Source: Piromyces finnis finn | Taxonomy: Eukaryota > Fungi > Neocallimastigomycota | Reading direction: 5' to 3' | Length of the DNA: 64,000 nucleotides | NCBI GenBank assembly: GCA_002104945.1 | Contig: MCFH01000003.1 | Span: forward strand, 1,054,001 to 1,118,000 | Shown: positions 8,741-37,201 of the stretch, in pieces | Layout of the letters: each line of letters opens with the position of its first letter | Position numbering within the stretch: the stretch's first letter is position 1 | Position numbers and translations under genes: made by a program | The notes under the pieces: model-generated | The model's input: the letters and a program-made list of their open reading frames with translations, nothing else | Databases searched by the model: none | Told to the model about the DNA's origin: nothing

Positions 8741-9080
8741 AATATATTTAATTCTTATTTGCAAAAATGTTACTTTTTGTTTTTGAGGAATATTATACAG
8801 TGAATTAAAAATATATATATATATATTTCAAAAATCTATAAAATTCATTCACATAATGACAGCAGAGTTTACCAATTTTTGATTAATAACTATTTTCAAA
8901 TGACTAATATAACTTTTTTACATTATGGTTTATAAAATAAATACTAATATTCAAATATATTTAATTAAAAAAATGTATTGGTTTTAATTAATAAAATGTA
9001 AAAATTACAATTTAAATATTATAGTTTTATATAATGAAATAGAATATAATGATGTTATTAGTTAATTATTTCTAGTATTC

Positions 9081-9634
9081 TATATATATTATATATTTAC
9101 ATTATATATTTATTTAAATTTTTCATTTTATATATATATATTTAAATTTGTTACCTTTATTATTATCTTGCGCGATAACTTTTGATTGATATATATGATA
9201 TTTTATTTTATGTTTGGGAAGTTTTGTTATTTTATCTCTATTAATAATATATCAATACTAATTATATATTAAATTGACCTTTTACATATTGTACCTAATG
9301 ATTTATCTACTAAATACAAATTGTGATATTATCAAGTTAGCCTTATTTATTGAAACATTTAAATTTATGTTAAAAATTTTAATTTCAGTTATTTAAAGTA
9401 AAAAAAATTAACAAAATTTAATATTTTTATTTATTACAAAAAGATTTATTAAAATATTTTACTTAATATTAAAATTGTTTTTTAAATATTAGTAAGTTTT
9501 ATTTTTTTTTCTCTTCCAGCATATTTATTATCATAAAAAGTATTTATTTTTTTTTCAAATCAATAAAATTTATTTCTTTTTATTTCACAGATTTAATAAA
9601 ATATATATTTTTATATATATTTTTTTAACATTAA
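9081..9634. repeat. Copy B: inverted and circularly permuted duplicate of 5309-5904
   Basis: The two halves are in swapped order relative to a simple inversion. The junction at 9380-9383 is a single TAAT. Confidence 0.9.
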
Positions 9635-9916
9635 GTTCAATTCTAATTAAAATAATAGTAATAATAAATAGTAAATAAATAAATAGTAAATAATAAAATA
9701 CTGTAATTTAGTAATAACTTATAGTTGAAAAGCAACTCTAAATGAAATCATATTTAAATTATAAAGAATAATTTTGAAAATACCGGAAAAAAAAATTACT
9801 TAATATTTTTTTTATTAACATTTCATTTTTATTTACATTAATACAACTATTATATATAAAATATATTTAAACTTTAAAAATCATTATATGTTGATATTAA
9901 GAAAAAAGTATATTAA

Positions 9917-17359: not shown

Positions 17360-18320
17360 CCAAACATTTTGTGATTGTTTTGTTAATCATTCCAATGAAG
17401 AAATTGCCTTGGATGTATTATCATCAACCGATGATGACGGGAAAATTGAAAAATATCCCGGAACTTCTACAAATATTAAAATTAATGTAAATAAGTATTT
17501 TGATCCTAGCTCAATCAGCGAAAATACTAAAACTGTTGGTGAATACACTTATAATGTTAATGAAATTCTAAATTATAAGTGTAGAGAAAATGAATTTATG
17601 CAAATTGATAATACTAATCCAGATGGTATATACTACCATTTACCTAAAAACCACTTTTCACACACAAATTTTTAAAATGTTCCGCTTGATTTTTTTTTTT
17701 AACTTCCGAGTGCATTTCTCCCATCGATCAGAGTTAGCTCCAATGGTGGTTCTTAGAGAAACGTTGGCTCATTCCTATTGCTAGGTGGTTGTGACCCTCC
17801 TGGTCTGTCATACTGTTTCTTCAGCTTCGACGCTCACTTAATCCATGTACATTAGATGCATGTCGTTGTACGATATTTCACAACTACAATGCTAAGCCTC
17901 TTATAGTCAATTTGATCACGTGTCAACCGCCCCCTAATGTTTACACTTAAATTGATTAAGGAATATTATGTGTTTTTGGCATAGCCTAAGTCACCACTTA
18001 TTAAGTTCTAATTTGGAATGTACCATGTACACTAGACCCTCTCAGGCCGGCTAGACGAGTGTTATTATCATAGTAGTAAATTAGAAAGTTCATTTATACT
18101 TACCTGAATATCATAACCCAACCCATGGCAAACCCAGTGGGAAAATCCACAGGCACTGACATCTGCGGGGTCGAACCAGAAGCCTTATGTATGCTAAGGA
18201 AACGCCTTAACAACCAGGATAAAAACTGGAACGACTTCCGCTTGAAAATGCTTCAAAATACTTCAAAACATAATTTAAAATTTATTATTTTTCTTCCTCA
18301 TCATGAAAATGATTTGCACT
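17360..18320 (+). pseudogene. Decayed exon of an unidentified protein, split by SINE copy 1
   Basis: Acceptor TTTTTAG at 17359 and open frame QTFCDCFVNHS...HTNF. After removing the SINE and one TSD, the frame continues NVPLENASKYFKT with several stops. Confidence 0.45.
17690..18235 (-). mobile_element. tRNA-Ala-derived SINE, copy 1
   Basis: 10-bp TSD TTCCGCTTGA (17680-17689, 18236-18245) and 11-nt poly(A). Head has A-box-like TGGTTGTTAAGGCG, anticodon loop TTAGCAT and B-box-like GGTTCGACCCC. Near-identical to 31103-31655. Confidence 0.9.
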
Positions 18321-27455: not shown

Positions 27456-29019
27456 TTAGTATTCGACCTCTATTCTTTTGTTTCATATTCCAAGGAAAAG
27501 TGATCTATTATTAGAAATATAATAATTATCAAGATATTTTACTCACACCTATTATATATCAAAGATTATTACAAATAAGAATATCAACATATGCCTTTTT
27601 TTTTTTTTTTCTACATGATCTCATTAGACCTAAACAATTTGGATTCCATAGCAAAGGAAAAAAAAAAAAATTAATTTATTCATTTCAAGTAGAGAAATCT
27701 GTCTAGAGATAAAAAATTATATAAAAACTAAATAGAATTTGTGTTACAATTTTCAACATTATTACCAAAAAACTTTTATTTCTTTACTTCTTTACTAATT
27801 GATACTTTTCTATAGATAAGCCGGATTAAATGTAGATTTATCCTTGATGTCAAGAATATTATTAAAAAGATACTTTGTGTCAGACACCTTCCTCAACATT
27901 TATTCTTGTTCCAGTAATATTAATAGTATTCCAAGTTTTATACTTTATAATATCATTATTAGTAAAAGTTATTTTAGACTAACCTAATCATAATAAAAAA
28001 AAAAAAAAAAAAAGAAAAAAAGAAAAATGGATGATTCCTTTTCAAATAGTTATTTTTTTTTTTTGATATTAATATAAATCAATGGATGATAACACGTGTT
28101 ATCATGAAAATAATATATTTTTTATAATTTAATTACATATTTTTATTTAAATTAAAAACTTTAATTTAATGAAAGTTGAAGAAATTCTTTAAAGTAAATT
28201 AAAAAAAGTATTTATTTTGCTTTTTTTTTTTTTTTTTTTACTATTTATTTAACTATTCTTTATATGATACTAGGATATTATTTCTTATTTATCTTTTATA
28301 AACTATTTCTACCTTTTTTTTTATTTCTATGTTGTTACTCAATAGTTTTTTTTTATCTTTGACAATAAAATAAAAAAAAAACTTTATTGTTTCCCTTATC
28401 CTACAATACAACAAAAATTATAATGTACATTATAGTTATGTCCAATCTTATTATTATTTTTTTTTTCTTTGACTTTCCAAATTCATGGAATTTCTTTTAG
28501 TGACCATTTTTTAAACTTTAAAACTAATAAAATTTATGACCTGTGTAACTTTAAATTACTGCCTAAAATTTTTAATTTAGATAGGTTTTTGGTATAAAAA
28601 GAAAAATCCTTTTTTTTGGTACTTTGAAATTTATTTGAAATAAAAAGATAAATACTCATTTTATATTCCTTTTTATTAACTAACAAATTAAAAAAAAAGT
28701 AAAAAAAAGGGTTTCTTTCATTCTTTTAAAGCTATTTAAATATTTTGATTATTATTCTTAATTATACCTATTATTATTTTTAATTTATTGTTCTTCTTCT
28801 TATGAACCTATAAATATATAACTATTAAAAATAAAAAAAAAAAAAAAGATTTTTACTTTTAATACTATATTAAATATATACTTATATTCATTTTATTATT
28901 CTTATTATTATTATTTCTATTTATAAGGTAGATTAAATTATAAAAAGTTATTTTTTTCTTATAATTTTGATGAAAAATGGTCTTTCGTGAATTAACTTCC
29001 TGGAAAAAGTAATATTAAA

Positions 29020-29103
29020 AAAAATATAGATACATATAAAAATATAAATACATATAAAAATATAAATACATATAAAAATATAAATACATATAAAAATATA
29101 AAT
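29020..29103. repeat. 18-bp minisatellite (AAAAATATAAATACATAT) x ~4.5
   Basis: Directly visible tandem units. Confidence 0.85.
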
Positions 29104-31102
29104 ATAAATAAATATTATTGTCAATTCATTCTAATGTGTTTTTTTCTCTTCATTATTACAATATTAGTATCAGAAGAGAATGTAATGTAACTACTAAACT
29201 AAATTCTATCGGTATTATTCATTTTATTTCTTTAATAATTCCATAATTTAAATATATAATTATATTAATAAAATTGTTATCGAGTTTAACTGACGATTTT
29301 TTTTAATACTTTTATAATATAGATTCATTATATATCGATATGAATGGTCTAGTTAGTAATAAATTACATAGTCTTAAAGACAGTATTGATGAATACTCTA
29401 TTGAAGAATTAACAGATTCTATTTTTGATTTAATCGATATTGAAACTAATACTTTTAAACCGAGGAAATGTGTAGGAATATTTTTTGATGGGGTTTCACC
29501 GAAAGCAAAAATGAATATTCAAAGACAACGAAGAATTCGCGAATATTATAAATATAAAGATAGGTGTAACTTTCAATTTAATTCTATTTCTATTGGAACT
29601 GAATTTTTTACTCAAATTTCCAATATAATTCATGAGAAAATTAAAAAAATAAAAGAGGACAGCAATTTAATTTGGAATAAAGTCAAAGTGGTTTTTTCTG
29701 GTCCTGATGTTGTTGGTGAAGCCGAACAAAAAATATTTGATTTCATCAAACAAAATTCAAAGAATACTTTAGAAAATGGATGTATCTATACCTCTGATAG
29801 TGATTTTTATTTATTAGCATTAGCTAATCGTCAATACCATTTATTGGTTTATAACGATTGCAATTGCAATATAAAAAATAATAAATCAATGAAAAGGAAT
29901 TTCTTTTCCGTTAAAAAATTATATCAATATATTTTAAGTCATTTCCAAAAGGTACAAGAAGAAAATCAAAGAAAAATTATTGATGATTTTGTTTGTTTAT
30001 GCTTTCTCACTGAAAATAATTATTTGCCAGGAATTCATGATGTTCAATTTAATGATATTTTTGAAATATATAAGGAAAATTGGAAAACGATTGGATTTAT
30101 TAATAATAATGGAAAGTTAAATGAAGAAAATCTTAAGAAATTCCTTTCCAAGTTAAATGATAAGGTTTCTATTAAAAATAAAATAATTTATCATTTAGAT
30201 GAAAAATTTATAAATTTTTGTAATGGTAAAGAGGATAATATAAATAGTAATAATGATGAGGATAGAAATTATATTATAAAATATGGTAAGTTTATAATAA
30301 TCAAAAAAAAAAAATAATAATAATATGACTTAAATATTATAAAATAAAATAAATACATTAATTGAAAAAATTAACTATTATCTGTTTTTTATTTTTAAAT
30401 ATTTTATAATTTATTATAGAATTAGTCAATCACTATATGTTAAAGAGTGAAGTTTTTGATGATATTCAATATTTTTGTAAGGATCAAAAATCCAAATCTA
30501 AAGATGTTGATTACAAAGATCCTATGGCTATTAAATATTTAAAATTCTTATGCTCTATCTTTAAATTTGAATACAAGGAAAATAATAAAATTCTCATAAA
30601 TGATCCAGAGAATAAAAAAGGATTGTATGACTCTGACCATTATTGGCAATTTAAAAAGTATTTAAATCAAAATAATTTAAATATTAATCATCTTAAAAAT
30701 TTTGATGATAAGAAAAAAGTGGAACTTTTAAATATGTGTAAAGAATGTAATATTAAATACAAGAGAAATAACTACATAACTATATTTAAAGGAGATGATG
30801 AAACTACTCCATTAAACATCATGAAAGAAATTGAATCGGAAGTCTATAATAAAAAAGACTTTTTCTTGAGTAAAAATGAAGAATATTACAAGGTATAAAA
30901 AATCTTTAATTATTTTTATATTTTTTTAAATAAATTAAAAAAATTCTAATTATAAAAAATATGATTTAATTATACTATATTAAAACAATACTTTTATTAC
31001 ATATTATATATTCTATTGTTATATATCTATTGTTATATATATAAATAGAGAAACATTCCAAATTGTAATAAGGGTCAATTGATTAATCAATTTATTAAAG
31101 GA

Positions 31103-31655
31103 GTCGTTCCAGTTTTTATCCTGGTTGTTAAGGCGTTTCCTTAGCATATATAAGGCTTCTGGTTCGACCCCGCAGATGTCAGTGCCTGTGGATTTTCCCA
31201 CTGGGTTTGCCATGGGTTGGGTTATGATATTCAGGTAAGTATAAATGAACTTTCTAATTTACTACTATGATAATAACACTCGTCTAGCCGGCCTGAGAGG
31301 GTCTAGTGTACATGGTACATTCCAAATTAGAACTTAATAAGTGGTGACTTAGGCTATGCCAAAAACACATAATATTCCTTAATCAATTTAAGTGTAAACA
31401 TTAGGGGGCGGTTGACACGTGATCAAATTGACTATAAGAGGCTTAGCATTGTAGTTGTGAAATATCGTACAACGACATGCATCTAATGTACATGGATTAA
31501 GTGAGCGTCGAAGCTGAAGAAACAGTATGACAGACCAGGAGGGTCACAACCACCTAGCAATAGGAATGAGCCAACGTTTCTCTAAGAACCACCATTGGAG
31601 CTAACTCTGATCGATGGGAGAAATGCACTCGGAAAGTTAAAAAAAAAAAAAAAAA
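31103..31655 (+). mobile_element. tRNA-Ala-derived SINE, copy 2, inserted in an XRN coding exon
   Basis: TSD TTTATTAAAGG (31091-31101, 31656-31666) and 17-nt poly(A). Two differences from copy 1 seen by eye. The flanks rejoin as LINQFIKGIEWLLKTYY. Confidence 0.92.
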
Positions 31656-32738
31656 TTTATTAAAGGTATAGAGTGGCTATTGAAAACCTATTATGATAAG
31701 GTTCCTTCATGGACTTGGCATTACGAACATCGTTATTGGAATAACAAATGTAATAGTTATGGTCCATTAATATCTGGTATTTATCACTTTTTTTTATCCT
31801 TAAAAATAATAAATTTAATTATTCATATATATATAAATATATAAATATTTACTCTTTTTTATAATATTAAAATTAAATTTTTATTTGTAATTTTATTTGA
31901 TAAAATGTTATTTTACTTATATAATATGTATTATTTATATAGATTTATGTGAATTTAATGAAAATCAAGTTTTCCAATTTGAACAAGATGAACCACTTCA
32001 ACCTTTAACTCATTTATTAACTATTTTACCTTTAGAAAGTTTTACTTTACTTCCAAATAATTATAAAGAGGTATAATTATTTAAAAGAAAAGTTGGAAAT
32101 TCCTCTTTTTTTTTTTTATTTTCTTTTACTTTCGATTTAAAGAAATAATAAATTTTTTTGATAATTAAATGTTTATTTCTATTAACTTATTTTACATTAT
32201 TATTATATCAATTAATATACCATTGAATCATTGATTATTTATGGGGAAAAAAAAGTTATTAAATCATGAAGAGATAAAAAAAATTGTATCCAGCAATAAA
32301 TAGTTTTTCAGATAAATCTTCTATGTTTAGATATATTTCTGGTCTTCCACTCATCAATTCAAATGACTATAAAGAAGAATTAAAAAGTAAATTCATTTTT
32401 CATCATCTTTTTAATATTATCTTCATATAAAAATAAACATAATTGATACAAATAATATAAAATATATAAAATATAATACAAATAAAGAAAAAAAATTTAT
32501 AATTCATTTAAAATTTTATTTTATATTTTAGCATTAAACAAAAATCTTACAAATAAAGAAAAATTAAGAAATGAATTTGGTGAAACGATTGAATATCTTT
32601 CTAATCAGTAAACACTATAATTTTATATATATATATATATTATTTATATTATTTTATTTTATTATTTGCTATTTAATTATTAATAAATTTAAATAAATAT
32701 CTATTAATATTGATTATAAATTTTTAAAAATATAATAG

Positions 32739-33240
32739 AGAAAAAATTAAAGATCAATATCAATGTTTAATGGACAATGAAAAATATAGGGAAGCCCTTC
32801 TAACAATCAATAAATTAATAAGTAAATAGAATATTTTTTATAAGAAAAGTAAATTAATATATAATTAAAACGAATAATTAATTAATTATTATATAAATAT
32901 TAATATTAATATAAAAATTAGTTAAGAGTGATAATGAAAATGATGATCATTACATTAAACGTGCAACAACCAATTTAAAGATGTATAAATATACAGATGT
33001 TATTGATGATTGCCATTATGCTTTAAAAATTAATAAAAATTGTGTTAAAGCTTATATACTACTTTCTAAATATTATAAGCATCGTGGTCAACTTAGTATA
33101 TCAAAAGAATATCTTAATAAAGGTTTAAACATATCTGAAGAAAATAAAAATTTATCAATTCATATTTCAAACTTGAAAACTGAAGTAAAATAACAAATAA
33201 TAAAATTGAAATAAATTTTATAATAATAATAATAATAATA

Positions 33241-33273
<33 letters not shown>

Positions 33274-35638
33274 TTTATATAATAATATATATATATATAT
33301 TTATATTAATGTAGTTGAGTATCATTGAAAAAATGGAAAATTTATTTGAAAAAGTAAATGAACAAATGAAAAATGGAAATTATAAGAATGCTCTTCAAAC
33401 ATTAGAAGAAACTATGATACTATGTGACAGTAAAATTAGTTCAAATTACCAGTCTAACAAATCATTAAGTATATTAAAGAGTGATGAATTAAGAGGAATT
33501 CCAATTAGATGGAGATTATTACGAGCCGAAATATTAATCATGAATAATGATTACCATGAAGCTATGACTATTGCTGAAATTATATTAGCTAAAGATAAGA
33601 ATAATTCTGAGGCATTAGCTTTAAAAACAAAATTACTTTATATCATGGGTAAAAGTAATATTGATAATGCAGTTAAATATCTCAGAAAAGCTGTTTATTA
33701 TTATAATAAAAACGAAGATGCAAAAAAATTAATTGAAAAAATCCCGGAATTAGAAGAAAAAAAGAAAGAAATTATTAATAATCTATTTAAAGCGGAGCAT
33801 TATGAAGAAGCCATACAAAAATATGATAAACTAATTAACGATTGTAAAGAAATTTATTTAACTGGTATAGTATTAATCATTTTATTAAGAAATAAAAGTA
33901 CATGTTTATTAAAGGTAAAAAAATATATATATAATTAAAATATAAAATAGAAAATAATAAGAATATTAATATTTAAAATTAATAATAATTCTTTTCCAAC
34001 TTTATTATTTATTTAATGATGAAAAAAAATTAGTTGAAAAAATATTCAGAATGTATTGAATGTACCACTGAAGCTATTGAAATTTTAAAAAGCATTGTTT
34101 TTGAAAATGGAGAACCAAAATCCAATGATGAATATAAACATTGTAAACAACAAGATCTTTTCTTTGAACTTTATAAAAAAAGATTAGAAGGTTATATCAA
34201 AGATGAAAATTTCCAAAAAGCTAAAGAAGACTGTGAAATTTTTAAAATGCTTAAACCAATTAAAAAAAGTAAAAGTTTATACACAAAAGACAAAGATAAA
34301 AATAATAAATATAGCTATAAATAATAATATTAATTATTTCTATTTATTCAAATAATATCTATATTTATAATTATATATTATTTGCGTATTATCTTAAAAA
34401 ATAAGAATTGAATATTGAAGAATTGTATAGAAATGAAAAGTAATATTATATAATTTTTTATCCTAATTTTAATATTATATATTTAATTATTAAAACTTAA
34501 TAGATTGGCAATTAATGCTAATGATATAAATATTATTTTTAAAAAAATTGGTTATTATAATAGGATAATTCTTTCAAATTTAGAAAGAGAAAAAGGGAAC
34601 AATTCATTTAATGATAATGACTTTAAGAAAGCATTGGATTTTTACAATAAATCTCTAGGTAATTAGAATTTTTTTTTTAATATATTGAAAGTTTAATAAT
34701 TTGATATGTTTTATTATAATGAAATAATAATTTAATCTGAACTTTTTTTTTTAAATATTAGAAATTTATTTAAATAATAATAAATCTTATTTCAATAGAG
34801 GTTTAGCTTATATGAAACTTTTTAAGTATGAAAAAGCCATTGAAGATTTTAGGAATGCTTATAGATACGATAATCAATATATTAAAGCAATTAATAACTT
34901 GTCAATTTGTTATCTTCAAATACTTGAACCTGAAAAAGCTTTAAATGAAATTGGAAATATTGATTTCCATTCAGATAGCAATTGCGTTAAAACATATAAT
35001 ATATCTAAAAAATTACATGACATGTATAAGGAAATTCGTAATTATTCCTTCAATTATGAAAAGTCTATAGAAAAATATAAATTATTGCTTGATGAATATC
35101 ATAATTACAAGATTTCTGGTTATATTGATGTTTTAATATATAAAAAAATTGCAAGTTTATATCAAAATGTATGTATTAATAATTTAAAAAAAAATTATTA
35201 TAATATTTTTTTTAAATGTATATTTAACTATAAAAAAAATAGTCAAGTAAACATATAGAAGGTATTGAATGTATCACAAAAGCTATTAAAAAATTAAAAG
35301 ATCTTGTTTTTTCAAATGGAGAATCAGAATCCAAAGAAGAGTATGAAAGTTGTGGAAAAAAAGATCTTTTCTTTGAACTTTACAAAGAAAAAATAGAAAG
35401 TCATATTAAAATTAAAAATTTCAGCAGTGCTAAAGAAGATTGTGAAACCTTAAAAATGATTAATCCAATTAATAAAAGTAAAGTTTTATTATAAAAAAAT
35501 AATAATATAAAAATAATATAATATATTTTATTCTTATTTGTTAAAATAATATATATATACTTATTTTTTGTATATCTCGTTAAATAAATAGGATTAGATA
35601 TTGAAGAAATTTTCGAAAAAATAAAAAAGTAAACTATC

Positions 35639-35688
<50 letters not shown>

Positions 35689-37201
35689 TAAAACTTTTTA
35701 TGTTGACTATTGTAATAGTGCTGATCTTTCAAATTCTGAAAAAAAAAGGAAACATTGCTTTTAAAAATGATGATTATAAGAAAGCATTTGAATTTTACAA
35801 AAAATCTATAGGTAATTAGAAATATTTTTTTTAGTTCATTATCTATCATCATTCATTATTATTATTATAATAAAAAGTCATAATAATAATTTAATATTAC
35901 TTAATAATTGTATAGAACTTAATAGAGAAAATAATGAATCTTATTTCAATAGAGGTTTAGTTTATATGAAACTTTTTAAGTATGAAAAAGCCATTGAAGA
36001 TTTTAGGAATGCTTATAGATACGATAATCAATATATTAAAGCAATTAATAACTTGTCAATTTGTTATCTTCAAATACTTGAACCTGAAAAAGCTTTAAAT
36101 GAAATTGGAAATATTGATTTCCATTCAGATAGCAATTGCGTTAAAACATATAATATATCTAAAAAATTACATGACATGTATAAGGAAATTCGTAATTATT
36201 CCTTCAATTATGAAAAGTCTATAGAAAAATATAAATTATTGCTTGATGAATATCATAATTACAAGATTTCTGGTTATATTGATGTTTTAATATATAAAAA
36301 AATTGCAAGTTTATATCAAAATGTATGTTGTATTAATGGTATATATACTTTTTTTTATTTAAAAAAAAGTTATAAACTAACTATATCTTTTTTTTTTACT
36401 ATTTAATTATAGTTGAACAAAACTAAAGAATGTATTATCCATATTTCCATTTCAATCGAAATGCTAGAAAAAAAAGTAATTAAAGACAATAATCCTACAG
36501 CTTCTACTTATAAGGAATCTGACTTTTGTGATCTTTTTATTGATCTATTTAAAATTAGAGCTAAAAGTTATTTTGATGACAAAAACTATCAAAAAGCTTA
36601 TGAATATTATAAAGATCTTTTCCATATGTGTCCATATGATCATGGTAAATAAGAATATTAATTAAAATATAATTAATATTGATAGTATATAATTATTAGG
36701 AAAAAAAAATTAAATTTTCTTTTTTTTTTTTTTTTTTTTTTTCCTATAATGAATAATATATTTAAATATTATTAGACATTGAAAACAATATGATATTTGC
36801 ATATATGCATAGAAATAATTCTTCTTCTTCTTCTTCCAGTTCTAGAAATTCAAGCAGTGGTTATAATTTATAACAGTTACTCAAACAGTGGTTATAATAA
36901 TTATAACAGTTATTCCAGCAATGGAAATAATAGCTACAACAATAATTCAAATTCTAACTCAAGAAGGGAAAGAAAAAAGGGTTCAAATTCTTATAGTGAA
37001 TATGAATGCTGTACTATTCTTGGTTTAGATCAAAATAATAATCCAACTATTAAAGATATTAAAAATGCATATCGTAAACTTGCCCTTAAATATCATCTAG
37101 ATAAATGTAAAGATGAAAACTTAAGAAAGGAATACGAAGAAAAAATGAAAGAAATTAATATTGCTAAAGAAACTTTAATGAAAATCAAAGGCAAAAATTG
37201 A
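32739..37201 (+). pseudogene. DNAJC7-like TPR-repeat array plus C-terminal J-domain, splice-compatible with the upstream XRN exons
   Basis: TPR motifs HYIKRATTNLKMYKY...CVKAY, EAL..KTKLLY, EKGNNSF...ALDFYNKS, SYFNRGLAYM..EKAIEDF. J-domain ILGL...DIKNAYRKLALKYHLDK...EEKMKEINIAKETL. An apparent -2 frameshift near 36876 uncouples the J-domain. Confidence 0.85.
34034..36328 (+). repeat. Intragenic tandem duplication of a four-exon TPR module (~34034-35174 and ~35233-36328)
   Basis: Homologous exon series with the same intron positions. 34783-35174 and 35937-36328 (392 bp) differ at one base by eye, while the upstream exons are clearly diverged. Confidence 0.9.

Follow-up and report, generated by a model that had tools for sequence, protein, structure and literature searches.

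Xrn1-type nucleases and the co-chaperones that combine tetratricopeptide repeats (TPR) with a J domain are each well studied; within the J domain, an HPD tripeptide is needed to stimulate Hsp70. To our knowledge, a direct covalent coupling of chaperones with RNA decay, of the kind suggested by the locus analyzed here, is known in no other eukaryote, and a full-text literature search returned no paper describing an Xrn1-type nuclease and a TPR/J co-chaperone in one chain. The locus lies at 28977-37201 of a 64,000-nt stretch of DNA (“the window”) from the fungus Piromyces finnis (contig MCFH01000003.1, assembly GCA_002104945.1; GC content approximately 18%); coordinates refer to the window unless another locus is named, and features are on the forward strand unless stated otherwise. 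It probably constitutes a single gene, in which an XRN core is followed by a TPR array and a J domain, and the comparison of relatives, taken with public gene models, makes it likely that the family to which it belongs is built on one fused gene, so that intact relatives would make a single fused protein. As far as the literature search goes this XRN-TPR-J fusion is previously undescribed, and as far as our searches reach the family is confined to the anaerobic gut fungi (Neocallimastigomycota).

The first half of the locus can be compared with Xrn1, a cytoplasmic 5′-3′ exoribonuclease (K. lactis, 3pie; yeast, 6q8y), with which it shares both conserved core regions, XRN_M reaching approximately profile position 344, as well as six acids of the active site, the 5′-phosphate pocket and the SWxW motif. 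Unlike Xrn1, it has no D1-D4/SH3 and no C-terminal region, and carries the TPR array and the J domain instead; its seventh acid is Asn, His41 is replaced by Ser, the N-terminal 30 residues are divergent, and identity is about 32%. Pfam was run on the exons one by one (E1 to E8 in the XRN part, T1 to T3 at the start of the TPR part), and database searches were likewise made exon by exon, never with a joined spliced model; joined translations of the window exons served for frame checks only. XRN_N was matched at 29340-30284 (E 3.5e-32, 112 bits against a cut-off of 22.9) within exon E3 (29323-30285), where the start of XRN_M adjoins it. XRN_M itself reached 28 bits in the window (cut-off 23.8) plus a further fragment, and an XRN_M fragment lies at 31945-32073, exon E6 (31943-32070) covering profile positions 242-274. 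TPR motifs follow across 32981-36649, and DnaJ was matched at 36797-37198 (E 3e-11, with 43.7 bits where the cut-off is 27.8).

In the PDB, Xrn1 of yeast and K. lactis matched best (4e-30 and 7e-29, across residues 2-310); Rat1/Xrn2 chains mostly aligned over the first ~80 residues only, and C. elegans XRN2 over 74-281. All six of the long relatives scanned from outside the family are of Xrn1 type, with D1, D2/D3 and SH3. The last XRN exon, E8 (32532-32607), closes the Xrn1 catalytic core and ends in phase 2, at the point where the XRN_M match of these Xrn1-type proteins stops, and the fusion thus puts the TPR-J module in place of Xrn1 D1-D4; no D1, D2/D3 or SH3-like domains follow the core in the window, where TPR motifs come next. 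Judged from these alignments, the XRN half is an Xrn1-type catalytic core lacking D1-D4.

An earlier note, made from the DNA of the window alone, had listed the active-site motifs IDMNG, FDG, K..QRQRR, GEAE, SDSD and ENNYLP, and every one of them is present as read. With residues mapped on K. lactis and yeast Xrn1 and compared in the family alignment, exon E3 (with its GEAE and SDSD motifs) keeps six of the seven catalytic acids: D35, D86, E176, E178, D206 and D208, as mapped on K. lactis Xrn1. The 5′-monophosphate pocket K93/Q97/R100/R101 is also kept, PKAKMNIQRQRR aligning to PRAKMNQQRARR of K. lactis Xrn1, and is invariant in the family alignment. The seventh acid, the Asp of GNDFLP, is Asn in ENNYLP (30018-30020), leaving the set one short of seven, and His41 is Ser; both replacements are found in all family members. 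ENNYLP had been taken for a peculiarity of the window copy. It is instead family-wide, and on the evidence of the alignment it is a conserved family trait, not damage.

The family is sparsely represented among predicted proteins. In a library of 1.8 billion representatives, exon E3 matched five non-self proteins below 1e-30, all of them short open-reading-frame fragments of the family, and the next matches were ordinary XRNs at ~32% identity; no fused chain surfaced in this search, because gene callers fragment the gene. A search for related loci on metagenome contigs, made with the family alignment, recovered only distant XRNs of 21-33% identity and none of the family.

For the second half, the closest described systems are DNAJC7 (TPR2) and DNAJC3 (p58IPK), which likewise have a TPR array followed by a C-terminal J domain. 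Unlike these proteins, the family has a much longer array, made of tandem A-s-B-C units and fused to a nuclease core, and the window copy reads HLD for HPD. The nearest Atlas clusters by protein-language features and predicted structure are “DnaJ and TPR domain protein,” DNAJC7 and DNAJC3 (scores 0.93-0.95). A PDB sequence search with the TPR exon gave nothing specific, with no significant match to solved TPR co-chaperones, and by search the J domain is generic. The label DNAJC7, given in the earlier note, suits the family as a class of architecture (TPR array plus C-terminal J) and no further; DNAJC3-like proteins fit equally. Of the five carboxylate-clamp residues of EEVD-binding TPR domains (K, N, N, K and R), judged by eye, the B-C unit has four, and the C′ type seen in relatives has the full set.

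The two halves meet between exons E8 and T1 (32739-32821), the latter carrying the first TPR motif. In the window, E8 ends AAT CA/GTAAAC at 32607, and T1 opens in frame at 32739 after TAATAG (AG/A GAA AAA); the 131-nt spacer between them (32608-32738, GT..AG) has a GC content of 6%, contains no ATG and, if retained, reads CAG TAA. The sequence here is exactly what the earlier note had described, namely an exon end at 32607, 131 nt of intron and an in-frame continuation into TPR. In the window T1 does not open with a start codon, and its sole ATG falls midway along the first TPR helix.

Given a junction of this kind, its conservation could be followed across the gut fungi. Loci were found by searching with exon T3 and then with P0008, an annotated hypothetical protein of P. 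finnis that matches the first four exons of the gene. Eight loci were compared: the window; L001 from Anaeromyces robustus (MCFG01000063.1), which has two tandem copies; L030 from Neocallimastix “constans,” identical in sequence to metagenome contigs L002-L005 (hence L002/L030); L029 from Piromyces sp. E2; and L006, L009, L025 and L028, which are further metagenome or Logan contigs, L028 being Illumina-derived. In all relatives' loci the order is XRN exons, TPR exons, J domain, on one strand. The spacer between E8 and T1 is 90-161 nt long, starts with GTA, ends with AG and keeps phase 2/1 in all eight independent loci, E8 ending two bases into a codon whose third base is given by T1 in eight of eight lineages; its GC content is 4-10% in the seven loci measured. 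Spacer lengths differ in every locus, so indels have happened, and yet the exon edges and the phase have been preserved. A retained spacer would give an immediate stop (CAG TAA or AAG TAA) in four of the seven loci counted, the eighth not being counted; in L002, L006 and L025 the stop is delayed by 3, 14 and 37 codons, respectively. Since the stop does not come at once in three of the seven, the conserved signal is the GTA splice donor and not a stop codon.

The earlier note had named intact paralogs or orthologs as the real test, and L025 offers such a relative: an open frame of 1,702 aa runs from the E1 ATG to a stop past an HPD J domain, along a homology-guided splice path that is heuristic only, as the script always yields some open path and is able to invent introns. 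The path needs zero invented exons in L025; in the window it drops parts of E6/E7, A2/s2 and the J linker and invents a 5-nt exon in an inserted short interspersed element (SINE).

Two public gene models bridge the halves. The 855-aa protein P0160 of Piromyces sp. E2 unites XRN_N, XRN_M and TPR in a single chain; it leaves out E8 and T1 and stays in frame because these two exons add up to 159 nt. XRN_M was matched at 65-82 bits in P0159 and P0160. For a 165-aa model of A. robustus at 9041-9887, a single GT/AG combination reproduces the model, joining E8 to T1 at the homologous sites. Elsewhere the gene is broken up: the P. finnis TPR-DnaJ model P0167 is labeled “partial” by NCBI and begins on an AAT codon inside T2 (at 32939), A. 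robustus P0166 begins at a Met halfway through a TPR motif, and in the Neocallimastix annotation E7, E8, T1 and T2 fall in an unannotated gap. Each of four annotations divides the locus at a place of its own, in no case between E8 and T1. Frameshifts in an A-run of E7 in the P. finnis and A. robustus assemblies may be one cause of this inconsistency. With at least four gut-fungal genome annotations breaking up the gene inconsistently, the family is invisible in protein databases. The cuts or gaps lie near 12411-13541 in L030, 8868-10001 in L001 and 10001-15569 in L029.

Three public runs of P. finnis could be recognized as RNA because their contigs are spliced. The contigs were compared over 31660-35905, a stretch picked to avoid the SINE and a duplicated pair of exons, C1 and C2, in the TPR array. 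Ten introns are confirmed by spliced contigs from two runs. The joints are 32070/32256, 32386/32532 and 33914/34034 in the XRN part and at T3; 34268/34406, 34439/34564, 34658/34762 and 35168/35243 in the first TPR unit; and 35477/35592, 35628/35719 and 35811/35916 in the second. The window copy is transcribed and spliced.

Several observations weigh against a single fused gene. No RNA contig covers 32586-32738 (the nearest ends at 32585), which leaves 32607/32739 uncrossed, and support for the fusion is accordingly comparative. The fusion proposed in the earlier note is in this sense upheld for the family, by the comparison of loci and the two bridging gene models, but not by a transcript across the junction of the window. 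In the annotations of P. finnis and Neocallimastix, the XRN protein and the TPR-DnaJ protein each have a gene of their own. In six of eight lineages (L002/L030, L006, L009, L025, L028 and L029), residue 2 or 5 of T1 is a Met, which may have been conserved as a residue or may serve as an alternative start. Word depth in run X1 is 160-250 over the distal TPR exons (34776-35811) versus 0-15 over the XRN exons and T3, an approximately 100-fold excess that may be artefactual or may come from an internal promoter or from another, identical locus; in run X2, depth is similarly low on both halves (2.6-4.2).

The locus might have a dual output, giving the fused protein plus an XRN-only product by intron retention (an isoform suggested in the earlier note), a TPR-J-only product started at the T1 Met, or both. 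The immediate stop on retention in four of the seven counted loci would serve the former, the T1 Met in six of eight lineages leaves room for the latter, and the X1 depth over the distal TPR exons far exceeds that over the XRN exons. We nevertheless consider dual output unlikely: no contig retains the intron or has its 5′ end close to T1 (where, over 32586-32738, there are no contigs), contig depth is unsuited to ranking parts of a gene, and the T1 Met is missing in two lineages.

The locus could also consist of two separate, co-oriented neighbors whose adjacency is conserved, a short XRN-like nuclease terminated by the TAA past 32607 and a TPR/J co-chaperone. Such a pair would account for the separate listing in two annotations, and both the stops after E8 and the Met near the start of T1 agree with it. 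It would, however, have to fit a poly-A site, a promoter and a 5′ untranslated region into 90-161 nt of 4-10% GC, and would leave unexplained why GT and AG stand at the exact homologous exon edges, in frame, in eight of eight loci despite the differing spacer lengths. The stop that would end the nuclease is unconserved, coming 3, 14 or 37 codons later in three lineages, and T1 of A. robustus copy 2 has no in-frame ATG with which the co-chaperone could start. As for the gene models, none of the four annotations cuts at the E8/T1 junction, P0160 and the 165-aa A. robustus model span both halves, and P0167 is marked partial. We therefore regard a pair of neighboring genes as quite improbable.

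While a single fused gene remains the preferred reading for the family, the copy in the window is decaying and cannot make the full fusion protein; a SINE, frameshifts and the HLD substitution leave the full chain beyond what this copy can encode. The SINE (31102-31655, 554 nt), which lies inside exon E5, bears a poly-A tail and is flanked by a target duplication of 11 nt (tttattaaagg, at 31091-31101 and 31656-31666), and a 99% identical inverted copy at 17690-18236, on the reverse strand, has its own target-site duplication (caagcgga); the hallmarks of a SINE, namely poly-A tail, target-site duplication and near-identical copies, are thus all present. The insertion cuts off the 5′ half of the exon (31049-31101, RNIPNCNKGQLINQFIKG, included in P0008) from the 3′ half (31667-31776, IEWLLKTYYDKVPSWTWHY..., with the XRN_M core motif), the latter covered by record 6 of the X2 RNA contigs and compared with relatives. 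The codons for FIKG directly adjoin those for IEWLL in the uninterrupted exon of L025 and L009 but are separated here, and P0008 reads into the SINE and stops at 31144 after 13 codons. A placement of the SINE in an intron, with an E4 donor at 30869, was considered and is ruled out by P0008 and the relatives. The SINE carries a consensus donor, CAG/GTAAGTAT, near 31233.

The earlier note had judged the copy damaged, and there are more lesions than it listed. Its view that the later junctions stay phase-compatible up to the final exon is not borne out, given one extra base in exon B2 and another in the J exon. The A9 run of B2 (35739-35747) has +1 A and leads to a stop, and the same letters are found in record 4 of the spliced X1 contigs; in the J exon, +1 T at 36867-36869 parts the frame of the linker from that of the J domain. 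A further shift occurs in exon E7 (32256-32386, with RNA joints on both sides), where an A8 run (32276-32283) gives a premature stop in the genome. The B2 frameshift is confirmed in RNA, those of E7 and the J linker are in the assembly. The J motif reads HLD at 37094-37102, a substitution and not an indel; A. robustus copy 1, L002/L030, L009 and L025 retain HPD, and L006 has HLN.

Two of these lesions speak less clearly for decay. The X2 RNA contig has A7 at the E7 run and then continues in frame, so this shift may reflect a mistake in the assembly or be polymorphic; E7 of the A. robustus assembly is shifted at an A-run in a similar way, and in L028 E7 is intact. The +1 T of the J linker, known from the assembly alone, could be a long-read assembly error. 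That the window copy is wholly intact, its frameshifts being long-read homopolymer errors and its SINE spliced out, could draw on the A7 of run X2, on the contrast between A. robustus and the Illumina-derived L028, and on an in-frame bypass from an alternative donor at 30869 to an acceptor at 31666, but is very improbable given that the B2 run is letter-identical in spliced X1 RNA, that the SINE with its target-site duplications sits inside conserved codons, that read-through stops after 13 codons as in P0008, that the bypass would remove 26 conserved residues and that HLD arose by substitution, not by an indel.

If the fused gene is intact elsewhere in the family, such a member would combine an Xrn1-derived core without D1-D4, having the 5′-monophosphate pocket and six of the seven metal-binding acids, with a modular TPR array of the DNAJC7/DNAJC3 class and a C-terminal J domain with HPD. 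From the known roles of these domains, the J domain would recruit and activate Hsp70, the TPRs may serve as docking sites for the C-terminal tails of Hsp70 or Hsp90, and the XRN core would bind, and probably degrade, RNA with a 5′-monophosphate; chaperone-driven remodeling of protein-RNA complexes would thereby be coupled to a module acting on RNA 5′ ends. It is a tentative proposal that intact members are active in this way, with Hsp70 recruited through the J domain and TPRs stripping or remodeling RNA-bound proteins and so letting the minimal Xrn1 core degrade from the 5′-monophosphate end. The earlier note had suggested that the fusion may serve RNA quality control, or defense against viruses or transposons. 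A conserved, phylum-wide fusion, if true, would amount to a direct functional link of Hsp70-driven ribonucleoprotein remodeling with the handling of RNA 5′ ends, and the family would offer a naturally minimal Xrn1 core for biochemistry. The window copy, for its part, is a dated example of gene death via a very young SINE.

The TPR array is built of A-s-B-C units, whose number varies between lineages. In the window it begins with T1, T2 (32922-33184) and T3 (33315-33914), the latter two matched by Pfam and T3 also covered by RNA contigs. The first unit (34034-35168) comprises A1 (34034-34268), s1 (34406-34439), B1 (34564-34658) and C1 (34762-35168), with all joints in X2 RNA contigs; the second (35243-36322) comprises A2 (35243-35477), s2 (35592-35628), B2 (35719-35811) and C2 (35916-36322), with joints in the X1 contig of record 4. 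Exon A3 (36413-36650) is the last TPR unit, assigned from Pfam and reading frames, and the last exon (36776-37201) encodes a Ser/Asn-rich linker and then the J domain, ending in a stop codon at 37199-37201. C1 and C2 are 98.5% identical and intronless. Relatives with two units have two different C types, each of them split by an intron; the C of the window resembles a chimera, with a first half of type C and a second half of type C′, and A. robustus copy 1 shares this chimera. The entire XRN-TPR-J gene occurs as a tandem duplicate in A. robustus (L001 83-3128 and 6523-13263) and also in the metagenome lineage L006 (309-1451 and 4331-8647), the second copy of the latter having a short TPR array and the degenerate HLN.

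Of the remaining XRN exons, E1 (28977-29008) has the start codon and encodes MVFRELTSWK, the N-terminus of P0008, and is kept in L025; E2 (29168-29211) is part of P0008 and was included in the frame check. E4 (30420-30892), also in P0008, encodes a variable linker between the two conserved XRN regions, with homologous exons in all relatives. An Rfam scan of the window was empty, and ARAGORN found no intact tRNA in it. Intron 1 contains an 18-nt tandem repeat, ATACATATAAAAATATAA, in approximately five copies at 29004-29111.

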